Shown here one piece after another: positions 2,140-8,167 of a DNA stretch of 60,612 nucleotides; position 1 is the first letter of the stretch, and every line of letters begins with the position of its first letter. Origin of the DNA: Parasitella parasitica NRRL 2501 (Eukaryota; Fungi; Mucoromycota). The stretch covers positions 1-60,612 of the forward strand of contig MU619269.1 of NCBI GenBank assembly GCA_025201805.1, read 5' to 3'. The position numbers and the translations under genes are program-made. The notes beneath the pieces are model-generated. The model was given only the letters and a program-made list of their open reading frames with translations, did not search any database and had not been told where the DNA came from.

Positions 2140-5100
2140 AAGATACCTGATTTTACTCTAAAAGCAGAGGATGTGAATTTTTTTTTGAACCTTTTTTTGA
2201 TGAGATGAAATTAGAAATGAGACAGTTGTTTTTAGAGGAACAAGGGGAGGCGTTTCTGTAATATTTGTTCAGTACCAGTGAAGGTCTATTTGGGCCAAAT
2301 TTTACATGAAGATAGTCTCCCAGACATTTACCTATAATTGATGTATCAATTCTAAAACCGGATGTCAATATAATACAAACTCATACTGAAGAGTGAAACA
2401 TCAGATCATAAAATAATATGACATGACATTTGGGATAGATACAATCTACCCTATCTCCCGGATCTCATCACTAAAACCTTTATCCTCACATCGCTTCTCT
2501 CAGTTCATGGAAAGTATATAAACCCTCTATTTTTGAATGTAATAAACGGATCTTTACCTGATTAATTTCTACTTGAACTTTTCTGATAAATCAATAATGA
2601 CCCTGAATGTGTATATTATATATAAATGTCTGCGTGACAGAATATTGTGAGCACGAAAAGTGTGATTAAGAATTAGAGCATGAGCAGCGGCATTTTTTTT
2701 AGTCAAAGTTAAGCATGTTTAGCGGCCAAAAAATCAATACTGCAAAGATACTCTTTAAAAAGATATTAAGGCACAAAAAAACAATATAAAGAGAATGATA
2801 TAAATACGACTCATCTACAAATATGTTTTTGTCGTATTGCTTAAAAGTGTTAATTGCTTTTCGTCCTTTTTTCCTTATAATTGCTTCTCTCATTCACACT
2901 AATAAATCAGTACTGATGAATTTTGTTTACAAGCCACTGTTACCCCTCATATGATATCAAAATCTTTTTACAACATTTTTCTTTTCTTCTCTTTATCTGT
3001 TTCTCTATCTTAATGTGTAATAAAAAGTTTAAAACAATTATTGATGACAAGAAACGTGAGAATTTGAAAAGCATAAAGCAGATCCTTATGAAGGTAAATA
3101 TAAGGTTATTATCGTTTGCACTTTCATTCACACTGTTGGCTTTTTTTTGGATCAAAAAAGATAAAATAAAACCAAATGTTAACGAAATACGACAACTTAA
3201 AGATACTTTGTTTAAGATCGTAATTGCATCTGCTATTTATACTTTTTACAACTACATAAATTTATGGTGACTTATTTAGATTACTAATTGACAAGACTAA
3301 TTCACAGTGGCAATCTACTTGACAGGGTACGATATGAGGTTATATAACAAGGGCTAAACGTTTTTGATCTGACAGTGCCTTAACCTTTATCTTGGTGCTC
3401 AGATCTGTGTTACTTACAGAAATAACCTTCTTGATTTGAAATAGAGACTTTATTCTCCAATTTACAGAAGCGTATCACATCACATCATTGGAAAATCTTC
3501 AATCTTCAATTGAAGTACATTGCCATGATCTCCTGTCTATAATTATGGCAGATCACTTTTAGGTGGAACCTGTGTCAACTGCGGAAAAAGTGGTCATCTT
3601 ACAAAGAATTATTTTAAACGTGAGCTATATTGTTGTATCCATATAAAGGCTACATATGTCATATCTAACTTAGTCATAATGCACGGATCATGATATTAAT
3701 TGTTGGTAATTCCTTTACAAATAAGGAATAAGCTACAAGTTGTAATTGGACCTCTTGCAAGGTTTCAGGCTTATTCAAAGAATACATCTAGATCAGATCG
3801 CGGGATGTCGGGAAGACATCCTACCCAATCTTCTCTTTAATGTAAAATAGAAAGATAGGTCTGTCCTGGAAATGCTGTGATTTAATAAGGTTTGACACTT
3901 CTTGTCAAACATCAGATGTTATGTGGATAAACATTGATTAGAATATATTTTAGTATAAATAGAGATCATATCTTATGTCAATAAAAGTCTTCAGTTTTGT
4001 ATCTGGTTTTATTCAGAAAGTCTTTATTACTTTATACAAATCTTATTTACATAACATTACGCTGCGCCCTTTGACACTGGCACAACATATATGTAGCTAG
4101 GACAGCTAGTGATGGTAAACAACTAAAACGCAAAGTGCCAAAAAGATATCTTTATAAATATAGTTTTCTTTTCTTATGTTTGTAGTTGGTTCCAGTACAA
4201 GTAGAAAACGAAAACAAACTCAAGAAACCAAAAATGATAAAAAGAAAGCAAAACTGGGAGAACGTAGTAGCTCAAACCAAAGTGATGATGTAATTTGCGT
4301 GAAGTGTAAACAGCCAGGCCACGTTAATGGACGCTCTGCTCTGTGTACTGAACGTGCTGAACGAAAGTCTGATGTTTTGAAGGATATTTGGGTACTAATT
4401 ATCGAGTGTTTTCAAGGAGAATATCGTTCAATAAAGCTATAAATGATGAATACAAAAGCAACTTGAACGAAAAAGTTGTTAATGCCTGCTCCACCGTCCG
4501 CAACCTGGTCTTTAAGGCGAAGCTGTTTGTCAATTATTATATTTTAAAAAGACATAATGATGCTGCTCCCGAGTGTATTGCTGCTCCCAAGTGTATTTTT
4601 ACTTAAAATTTCTGGCACACTGCAATTCAAATGGTCAACGGGTAAGCACTTACGAGCAAGAAAGAACTTTCTGATGAATTTATGGAATTATTAAATAGCT
4701 TCAAAACGGGCAATCCAACTTTCGCACATACAGTAACACGTATTCCTGGGGCTTCCCAATGTATTAGTGAGGCTTGCATAGAAATTGCCACTAGTTATAA
4801 CAACGCTATTGTGGAAAACTTTGAAAAAAGACTTATGTATTTTTTAACATTTAAGTTACAGACAATGTTTGTGGTGAGTTCGGATTAATGCAATAGATGA
4901 TTTCCAAAGAAAAAAAAAACTTCAACATCTATATATGTAGTCATTACACCCCACGCTCATCCGCGATGTTGCTAGTAAATTTTGCTATCAATAAGTATGT
5001 GAAGGAAAACCTATATGGCCAAATGATGACAGTTTGACTGAGGAGATTAAGTCTATTATTCTGGATTTTTGACAACATTGGAGGAATATTTTGAAGAAGC

Positions 5101-6728
5101 AAGTAACTTTGAAGCAGCTTAGTGCAGATCCTGGATATTTTGTTCCTTTTTTGTTCCTTATGAACAATGAATTGTAAAGAGAATGGGCTGAGCACGCAGC
5201 TTTTGATGTCAGAAGATTACCGCTGCCAAGGTTGTTTTCAATTCTTCCAGCTGCTAATACAAAATGGAGATTTATAACTTTAAATGTTAACGCCCTATCG
5301 TCCTTCGTCAACATTGCGCGACCAAAAGGATACCAAGACCAGTTCGATATGTATTCCCGAGTTTTCAATTTTAAAAACATTCGTTTTAATAAAGAGTAAG
5401 TATAAAACTTATAAACTGTAAGTCAAACGGCTAACGCTCTATATCAATAAAAAATTAAAACTCGATAGTTCTCGTTCTATTGATCAAGAAACAAAAAAGA
5501 TACTGTTTGGAAATACGATCAAAACTGATGGGGTTTCTGTAGATTTCTTGTTCTACAAAAGTGCACCTAAGAAAAAGGGTAGCTCTGCAAACATGTTAGA
5601 TCTTTCTCTGGAAGACTTTGATTTAAATGAAGTATCCGAGAAGTACAATCCTATATTCATTGATCCTGGAAGAAAAAGTGTCTTTACTGCAACTGTTGGT
5701 TTAGAGAAGCAGCAGGTTAGAAAATGTCCCACCAAGGAGTATTATCATATGACAGGCTCTACTGCATTCTGTAAAATGCAAAACGCGCAAAAAGAATCTA
5801 ATGGCCCACAGTTGATTGAAAGCAAAATACCCACAGCCAAAACTTCAAAAATCAGCAAGTATGAAGAGTATGTTTATTACATCTTGGAGCATCTTGACAC
5901 TTTTTTTGGTTTTTATAACTTTAATACTGCGAAAGAACATTTCAATCTTTATATAGGAAGACAAAGAGCACCTCAGCTTATGGTCAACATGTTGACAAAC
6001 GGAACAAAGAATTATAACAGATCGTTAAGAACGAAGAAAAAGAAAAGAAAAGAAGAAGAAGGATAGAAAAGAAGAAGACAAAGCAGAACCTCATCCAAAG
6101 TAAACTACTATTTTTGTATTTGAACATGAATCAACTGTAAAGAGTTAACCTTTTTTTTAGAGTCTCTAAATGGAAAGAACCCAAGTTCGACTAATGCAAA
6201 GACAAAATTCCCTTGGTAATCTTTGGCGATGGCGTTTTCAACAAAAACCATGTTACATTCAAAGGGTTGCGGCACGGTGTTGTTGATTTATTTTTTAAAG
6301 CCTTAAAAAGACGTGAAGCAGAAGTTGAAGTGATTGTTTGTACAATCAATGAATTTAACACCTCCAAGAAATGCTGCCTCTGCCTTTCCGAGACAAAAAT
6401 AATTAAGACCAAAGGGTTTAAAGGGTTTTCCGTTTTGTCCTGTCCTAATTGCAAAACTGTATGGCAGAGAGACATTAATGCAAGTCTAAATATGATGGGC
6501 ATCTCTTTGTCCATCTAGGCAGGGAGAGGAAGACCTTCAGATTTTAATCGCCGTAATAAACACGGTCTTCCCGAAAGGGATTAAGATTTTTACAGGCAAA
6601 TGTCGAAAAACTAATTCTTTCTGTCTCATTTCCATTTTTATTTCGTCCAAAAAAGGTCTAAATAATTAATTTTAATTCGTCCAAAAAAATTAACATCGTC
6701 TACTTTTAGAGTAAAACCCTGTACTGTA
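2140..6728 (+). mobile_element. Non-autonomous Tc1/mariner-like TIR DNA transposon carrying a Fanzor gene
   Basis: Left 2151-2225 (ttttactctaaaagcagaggatgtgaattttt...gaaatgagacag) is the inverted match of right 6621-6716. The right terminus reads CAGTACAGGG on the minus strand and is flanked by TA (6727-6728). The left terminus is degenerate. No DDE transposase ORF was seen. Confidence 0.7.
4097..6584 (+). pseudogene. Fanzor1 (TnpB-like RNA-guided RuvC endonuclease), intron-containing, disrupted
   Basis: Motifs RLFSILP..WRFITLN, FGNTIKTDGVSV, RuvC-I IFIDPGRK (D 5662), VIFGDG, RuvC-II INEFNTSK (E 6351), Zn finger CCLC..CPNC, RuvC-III WQRDINASLN (D 6471), C-terminal GRP.DF. Introns ~4115-4185, 4874-4940, 5396-5468, 6100-6160. 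In-frame stops at 4604, 4644, ~5175, 6192, 6516 plus frameshifts. No ATG found. Confidence 0.92.
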
Positions 6729-6745: not shown

Positions 6746-8167
6746 TGCATTGTAATTACCAGAGTCCTTTGAAGAGTATACCCTGGATGAGAACTTTATT
6801 TGTATGAGGCATACAATAGTAACACGTTGATTGGTAGTGCCTATTTCACAGCTACGAAGAAGAATATTTAGTATTGATATTCTCTCACATAGCGGATAGC
6901 AGCTGACATTTGGAAACAACGATCGAGTTTGCGATGCATTGTTGATTCTTTCTTGTTGTTTATCTAGTATTAACCCAACTGCGACGAGTTTTAAGAACAG
7001 ATGCTCTATCGAACTATGAAATCTAGCATAACCAAGTATTGCTTGATTTAAAGAAGGTCTGAATAGTGATGGAATGGAATTTGATATCATTATGATTCTT
7101 TGAGCCATTCTTGATAAGTTGAAAATGAGCAGAACCAAAATCGATGGCTTTTTTATATTACAGTACAAGACATTTCATAATTAGGTTATTCGTGATCATT
7201 TATTTGAAATTATCAACATTTAACATTAGGTCTGACTCAGGAACGGTTGCCATGGTAATGTATGAATTATCAGAATGAGAAATTATTCAAATAAAACGAT
7301 TGTGAATTAATCAGGTCCAGATCTCGTTTAATACATGGAAAAATGGTGGTTTATATAGTGAATCTAAATGGACTGATGGGAGGATAAGGTATTAGTGTGA
7401 GACACGGTGTGATTTAGAGAGTGGAACGTTGGATTGTATCTATTGTCCATGAACATGTCATGTTGAGTGGTAAATAAGGAACATGATCCATTGGGATATG
7501 TTCCTGAATTGCGTTCAGGATTGAGTTTACTTGAGTTTGACTTCCGGTTGGGAAATTGACACATCAATGTATTCGCTATATGATATTCTACGAATACAAC
7601 AAAAATTACTGAAGATCAGCTAGCTGCTAACAAACTTGTCGCGTTGTTATTTCTGAGGAATGTGATCATTTGAAAAGAATTTATACCGTAACAGGAATTG
7701 CGTTATGAATCTATCAAATGTTGCCGATCGATTTGAGCCATCTAATCCGTAACACAGCCCACTGCAGGCACGAGCAGTGCAACCCCCCCCATTAGAACGA
7801 ATGTCGAAAAAAAAATCATCTTAGCGAAGCGAAGATCAAGTTTTTTCTCCGTAGTGGTGACAGCCCATTAATTGTATAAATGTGTCTGAAGTCATTTTCT
7901 ATCGTAAGTCAGTACAGAAAGACGTGAGAGTAAAAGACTCATGGCGTCTTTCATTTACATCACTCTTGATCGTTTTTAGTTTATATTTTGCTATTTTTTA
8001 GTCATACCGCAAAACCTGGTAAAGCTTATACATTAAATAATCCATTCCTTTTGTAATGAGAGATGTTTAATATTGCATTTTCCTTTATGCAATACCTTTT
8101 GTATTTGTGAAATCACACATGCATTAGCAAAAGGAGAGAGCAGAATATATACCACACTAATAAATGT

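Follow-up and report, generated by a model that had tools for sequence, protein, structure and literature searches.

Near the start of contig MU619269.1 of the fungus Parasitella parasitica NRRL 2501, positions 2146-6721 of the 60,612 nucleotides that were analyzed (the window) very probably represent an old and dead, non-autonomous DNA transposon of the cut-and-paste type with terminal inverted repeats (TIRs) and a duplicated TA target site, which is of the same kind as ROr-3 and carries as its sole gene a Fanzor1, an RNA-guided nuclease of the RuvC type. A TA-flanked element with only a Fanzor1 gene is an already known kind and ordinary for Mucorales. The genome in which copies and partners of the element were sought comprises 32.8 Mb in 450 contigs, parts of which are masked (N).

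The assignment of the gene is carried by two pieces of its coding sequence, which, like all exons of the window gene, were searched singly. The piece at 6213-6515 matches PF07282 (Cas12f1-like TNB, or OrfB_Zn_ribbon) at 1.2e-10 and 41.8 bits (cut-off, 26.3), as well as the structure of the TnpB-like TranC, while the piece at 5548-6063 matches SpuFz1, the Fanzor1 of Spizellomyces (8GKH), at 3.6e-5, with its IDPG aligned to the RuvC-I aspartate. This agrees with an earlier reading made from the sequence alone (the sequence-only reading), which had taken the plus-strand pieces to encode a TnpB/Fanzor protein. The motifs named in that reading are all present and the catalytic residues survive: IDPG of RuvC-I (Asp codon 5662-5664), INEFNTSK of RuvC-II (Glu codon 6351-6353), the C4 zinc finger CxxC..CxxC (6372-6383 and 6441-6452), and RDINAS of RuvC-III (Asp codon 6471-6473). 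Furthermore, the window gene conforms to the Fanzor1 motif D-X(125,275)-[TS]-[TS]-X-X-[C4 finger]-X(5,50)-RD (Bao & Jurka 2013, PMC3627910): the aspartate at 5662-64 is followed about 212 codons on, across intron 5, by T-S-K-K-C-C-L-C from 6360, and the RD stands 5 residues past the second CxxC (6441-52), within the spacing of the motif.

A HMMER search of the full library with the piece 5548-6063 returned 439 relatives, including the intact protein P0007 (690 aa; genome GCA_040367835.1), and tblastn of P0007 on the window covered its residues 26-682 (approximately 657 residues) at 43-54% identity. Since a search with the whole P0007 sequence against solved structures was weak (1.8e-4), a search by fold was needed. 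The P0007 model, with a predicted local distance difference test score (pLDDT) of 82, superposes on SpuFz, GtFz, and PpFz at E-values of 8e-16 to 3e-11, and Cas12j, Cas12f, and TnpB are next in rank. The RuvC/TnpB fold proposed for the window protein, which in Fanzor1 comprises WED, REC, RuvC, and TNB, is thus seen by proxy only, in this intact homolog. The closest database match, P0003 (82% identity), stems from a 992-bp metagenome contig and also contains a stop and a deletion.

Gene structure, decay, and transcription

On the basis of P0007, a sister copy of the element on contig C39, and contigs from public runs, the window gene was modeled with six exons and five introns on the plus strand, starting from an ATG at 3013. 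The sequence-only reading had let the gene begin at approximately 4176, and two further introns (3094-3562 and 4115-4185) lie upstream. It had also joined its fragments through four GT-AG introns; within its span, three are real (4874-4940, 5396-5468, and 6100-6160), whereas the other breaks are stops or frameshifts, such as a 1-nt deletion at 4385/86.

Exon 1 (3013-3093) has an N-terminus that matches P0007 residues 5-26, and the removal of intron 1 (3094-3562) is seen in contigs of run X7 that are of the sister type and join 3093 to 3563. Exon 2 (3563-4114) is split by a nested repeat at 3631-4087, and intron 2 (4115-4185) is missing from a spliced X7 contig, likewise of the sister type, that passes from 4114 to 4186. 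Exon 3 (4186-4873) corresponds to the recognition (REC) region, and intron 3 (4874-4940, GTGAGT..TAG) is placed by frame continuity with P0007 and by an X7 contig that ends at 4940. Exon 4 (4941-5395), defined by the P0007 alignment, contains three stops. Intron 4 (5396-5468, GTAAGT..GCTAAC..TAG) is retained in run X2 but spliced out, between 5395 and 5469, in an X7 contig that shows no mismatch to the window copy. Exon 5 (5469-6099) encodes the RuvC-I aspartate; at intron 5 (6100-6160), pieces of X7 contigs end at 6099 and a sister-type contig is spliced. Exon 6 (6161-6584) encodes the RuvC-II glutamate, the C4 zinc finger, and the RuvC-III aspartate, and ends with the natural stop at 6582. 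The N-terminal exon pieces gave no match in a Pfam search. This part of the protein contains two CX2CX4HX7C knuckles, one in exon 2 (3563-3630 with 4088-4114) and a CCHC-like one in exon 3 (4290-4345), of which P0007 and another intact relative, P0109, carry the second only.

The label of run X7 as RNA is a guess only, and X2 is a DNA run with unspliced contigs. However, X7 contigs are spliced at the predicted introns, which the X2 contigs retain, so that X7 behaves as RNA, and its spliced contigs mean that both the window copy and the sister copy are transcribed and spliced. The window gene is, therefore, still transcribed, and its introns are correctly removed; the contigs give neither expression levels nor RNA ends. 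For the Fanzor1 clade of the window, this yields a six-exon gene model checked against transcripts. One further X7 contig (6695-7425) includes the terminal 27 nt of the right repeat and extends over the TA into at least 700 nt of flanking sequence; it has a plus-strand GT..AG intron at 7254-7313 and a depth of approximately 85, compared to 14-18 over the Fanzor exons. As it crosses the right repeat into the flank, plus-strand transcription goes on beyond the right end of the element; this contig could be an element read-through or a host transcript.

Despite the survival of all catalytic motifs, the window Fanzor1 gene is dead. Seven in-frame stops (4604, 4643, 4992, 5070, 5175, 6192, and 6516) and three frameshifts (1-nt deletions at approximately 3061, as compared to the sister copy, and at 4385/86, and one in the purine tract 6029-6066) interrupt its frame, and, together with three nested insertions, they bear out the earlier description of a decayed copy. 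For the four stops that can be compared, the sister copy has CAA (4604, 4643, and 6192) or TGG (6516). The window copy can, therefore, make no nuclease, and it probably lacks a working guide RNA too. The proposal to rebuild an intact consensus does not hold for the Parasitella parasitica genome: the copy on C39 is the only sister in it (90-96% identical), and it is devoid of window positions 4819-6079, i.e., 1.26 kb of the open reading frame (ORF), a region that holds three stops and one frameshift of the window copy. Its right end is truncated as well.

Element boundaries and related copies

The limits of the element were set by an alignment of termini, comprising the three available termini of its own family and 11 ends of related elements. 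This resulted in an element of 4.58 kb (2146-6721), slightly inside the earlier limits of 2140-6728. On both sides, the end of the shared repeat sequence abuts a TA, representing the target-site duplication (2144-2145 on the left and 6722-6723 on the right), and a TA directly follows 12 of 12 related element ends. In run X2, the insertion is identical in site to the window element.

The TIRs consist of two pairs of inverted-repeat arms, 2144-2184/6683-6723 (41 nt, 85%) and 2181-2225/6621-6665 (45 nt, 80%), which together amount to approximately 100 bp and are built from repeated AGACGA-type sub-motifs. The right TIR (6621-6721, minus strand) is defined by the inverted-repeat search and by alignment to related ends, while the left TIR (2146-2225, plus strand) is decayed, being approximately 30 nt shorter than that of the sister copy, with its terminus mutated to CCTG. 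Thus, of the inverted repeats ending in CAGT/TA that had been described for this element, the repeats and the TA are borne out, whereas CAGT is found only in relatives: the termini of the window copy (CCTG...CCCTG) correspond to CAGG, which is also read in the sister on C39.

Beyond this sister copy, the genome contains at least 41 PF07282 loci. The outer ~68 nt of the TIR are 83-87% identical to repeat pairs that lie 3.6-3.8 kb apart on C46, C188, C8, C25, and C2, and they are likewise matched by single ends on C35, C77, C44, and C104; all of these pairs and single ends terminate in ...CTG, followed by TA. The listed PF07282 matches on C46, C188, C25, C104, and C44 lie within a pair or just upstream of a right end, the distance inward from this end being approximately 370 bp on C46, C188, C25, and C104. 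Other Fanzor copies are, therefore, bounded by the TIRs of the window element, as the sequence-only reading had expected. In the C-terminal domain, the Fanzor of this shared-TIR family and that of the window share only 28% identity. That one TIR module serves Fanzors down to 28% identity suggests that the nucleases spread by means of a common transposase acting in trans or by the swapping of repeats.

Seemingly open frames of 550-1,120 aa at other PF07282 loci were rejected as artifacts of masked N stretches, due to which no intact paralog can be read from the genome. A different, decayed Fanzor copy (L062, C13:344011-345939) encodes a protein 87-92% identical to P0007, as compared to 43-54% for that of the window. 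This closeness suggests that the two genomes are closely related or that this Fanzor family was recently transferred.

The Fanzor gene is the only gene inside the window element, and no ORF within it is long enough for a transposase, in agreement with the previous description. Three LTR-like repeats (LTR, long terminal repeat) are nested in the 5' half of the element: a 255-bp repeat with TG..CA ends at 2339-2593 (5-bp duplication ATAAT), which is not present in the sister copy and is skipped by sister-type contigs; a 411-bp repeat with TG..CA ends at 3145-3555 (duplication CTTTT), which lies inside intron 1 and enlarges it; and a 457-bp insertion resembling a solo LTR (TGTTG..CAACA) at 3631-4087 (duplication TATAT). 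Without these nested repeats, the element measures approximately 3.44 kb. At least 40 copies of the 457-bp repeat, with 95-99% identity, occur in the genome, and since it adjoins gypsy-type pol ORFs (ribonuclease H/integrase) in two loci (L010 and L022), it is probably a solo LTR. Elsewhere in the genome, the three high-copy TG..CA repeats insert into each other (loci L005-L030), including a 457-bp repeat inside a 411-bp repeat on C1. In the upstream flank, a run of 10 Ns (1954-1963) is located between exact 38-bp duplicates (1916-2001), probably an assembly gap artifact, and public runs contain the region 1500-2090 at very high copy.

Candidate guide RNA and mobilization

The 3' non-coding region of the element (6549-6721, plus strand) is a candidate omegaRNA precursor, as it contains blocks that are conserved across lineages regardless of frame: a CGCCGTAAYAAACACGG hairpin, TTACAG/GY, CTAAY, AAAAAG/GT, and TTTTAG 12 nt from the end. 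CGCCGTAAYAAACACGG lies in different reading frames in the window gene and the P0007 gene, and its conservation is, therefore, not protein-coding. A consensus fold of five 3' regions resulted in one 5-bp hairpin only, with one compensatory change, and a search of the 3' region against Rfam gave no match.

Several of these blocks resemble splice signals. A spacing pattern of AG/GTAAR, CTAAC, AG/GTAAG, (C/T)TAAC, and an AG 8-12 nt from the end recurs in the elements on C44 and C77, in family-B elements, and in the P0007 element (L090), and splice-like signals between the Fanzor stop and the element end were found at the right ends of L077, L031, L088, L081, L084, L079, L083, and L090. The approximate spacers (AG/GTAAG, ~37 nt, CTAAC, ~40 nt, AG/GTAAG) are kept by four Fanzor lineages and also in a different species. 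In the window copy, the signals are decayed, the first donor being GC and the second having lost 10 nt. Judging from this pattern, we tentatively consider that the stretch from stop codon to right end may consist of two to three head-to-tail mini-introns, in which case guide-RNA assembly would fall to the spliceosome, although this is the less probable outcome. If such mini-introns were spliced, conserved RNA from behind the stop would come to adjoin flanking host sequence. The window copy thus adds a decayed example to a family with conserved splice-like signals at its right ends, which may represent a route of guide-RNA maturation.

By analogy with published Fanzor and TnpB biology, intact members would derive their omegaRNA from the 3' part of the transcript, between stop codon and right end. 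The DNA immediately beyond the right end would supply the guide, and the nuclease would cut matching DNA beside a short motif. Movement would need a transposase of the Tc1/mariner type, acting in trans and recognizing the shared repeats. The Tc1/mariner-type label given to the element earlier rests on the TA duplication, the CAGT-type ends, and published precedent; a transposase with matching ends was not found. Among the 150 listed of at least 171 DDE_3 matches, 1 Transposase_1 match, and 23 HTH_Tnp_Tc3_2 matches in this part-masked genome, none is located within a repeat pair. DDE_3 matches often form inverted pairs with equal scores, 3.8-8 kb apart (e.g., C46:167897/175900, C128:47419/51283, C25:91988/96190, C66:63818/69960, and C29:17151/23961).

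It should be noted that several points weigh against a dead element of the ROr-3 kind as outlined here. The window copy has CAGG/CCTG in place of CAGT termini; pattern and profile searches of the part-masked genome revealed no autonomous partner with matching ends; and two runs with the same species label in which the element is absent (X18 and X19) have no contig across the flank, so that no empty site was recovered. Furthermore, the fold result is that of P0007, a natural intact homolog of the window protein, the omegaRNA is a putative one for which the consensus fold offers the single hairpin, and ROr-3 itself was given no superfamily by Bao & Jurka (PMC3627910).

Two of these points, the missing partner and the unclassified ROr-3, also favor an alternative in which the element is part of a different TA-targeting transposon group, outside Tc1/mariner, or does not depend on a DDE transposase for its movement, its likeness in TA and CAGT being convergent, and the sharing of one outer repeat between Fanzors 28% identical fits this as well. 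We nevertheless regard it as unlikely, as the combination of a TA duplication with CAGT ends and with long repeats that contain direct sub-repeats corresponds to the inverted-repeat/direct-repeat (IR/DR) pattern of Tc1, and ROr-1, ROr-2, and MCi-1 combine Fanzor1 with a Mariner transposase and TA duplications (PMC3627910). In addition, a transposase partner could be hidden in the many masked stretches of the genome. At locus L064 (C185:29841-31937), an ORF with a helix-turn-helix (HTH) of the Tc3 transposase type lies 200 bp downstream of a different Fanzor gene and in the same orientation; this Fanzor shares 29-43% identity with P0007. The otherwise masked locus may be a composite of Fanzor and Tc1 transposase similar to ROr-1. 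That the window instead holds a domesticated host gene or an active element, as its correctly spliced transcript and intact catalytic motifs might suggest, is highly improbable in view of the seven stops, the three frameshifts, the 457-bp insertion within exon 2, the 1.26-kb internal deletion and truncated right end of the sister copy, and the inverted repeats with TA flanks, which are the mark of a transposon.

Relation to known systems

The window copy alone matters little, as its kind was catalogued in 2013 and the copy is dead. Bao & Jurka, who defined Fanzor1 (PMC3627910), list TA-duplicating elements of Mucorales and chytrids, among which ROr-3, SPu-1, and SPu-3 carry Fanzor only. Fanzor1 proteins are omegaRNA-guided DNA endonucleases with an RNA that reaches beyond the ORF and overlaps with the right repeat (PMC10530073, PMC11423790).

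ROr-3 of Rhizopus oryzae (2,862 bp, 133-bp repeats, TA, 16 copies; Bao & Jurka 2013, Mobile DNA 4:12; PMC3627910) resembles the window element in having Fanzor1 as its sole gene, a TA duplication, AGACGA-type sub-repeats, and long TIRs (133 bp compared to ~100 bp), and approximately 28 of the first 33 nt of the repeats agree by eye. However, it represents another Fanzor1 lineage with a different N-terminus, it is shorter (2.86 kb compared to 3.44 kb without nested repeats), and it is found in 16 copies, whereas the dead window copy has one sister.

The P0007 element (L090:5548-8865 in GCA_040367835.1) measures 3.3 kb, has a Fanzor as its sole gene, and is bounded by 92-nt repeats with CAGT..ACTG ends and by TA on both flanks. 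CotH genes are present in its genome, which we take to be that of another member of the Mucorales, the CotH family being typical of this group. The element shares with that of the window the exon-1 motif, the knuckle, the catalytic motifs, the layout without transposase, and the 3' blocks behind the stop; unlike in the window, its ORF is intact, and the outer part of its TIR cannot be aligned with that of the window. No inverted repeats were detected around P0109 and P0030, two more distant intact relatives from other genomes.

SpuFz1 (SPu-1 element of Spizellomyces punctatus, 8GKH), a demonstrated omegaRNA-guided DNA endonuclease (PMC11423790), probably shares the Fanzor1 fold with the product of the window gene, as judged by the P0007 proxy, and its element has TA, inverted repeats, and no transposase. 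It is approximately 17% identical to P0007. SPu-1 measures 2.1 kb, with 33-bp repeats and no introns, in contrast to the five introns of the window gene with its one to two N-terminal CX2CX4HX7C knuckles.

Finally, bacterial TnpB (IS200/IS605) has in common with the window protein the core of RuvC-I/II/III and zinc finger (PF07282), and the 3' end of its element encodes the guide RNA. The window, however, contains a eukaryotic, intron-bearing gene within a TA-duplicating TIR element, and not a TnpA (Y1) single-strand transposon.

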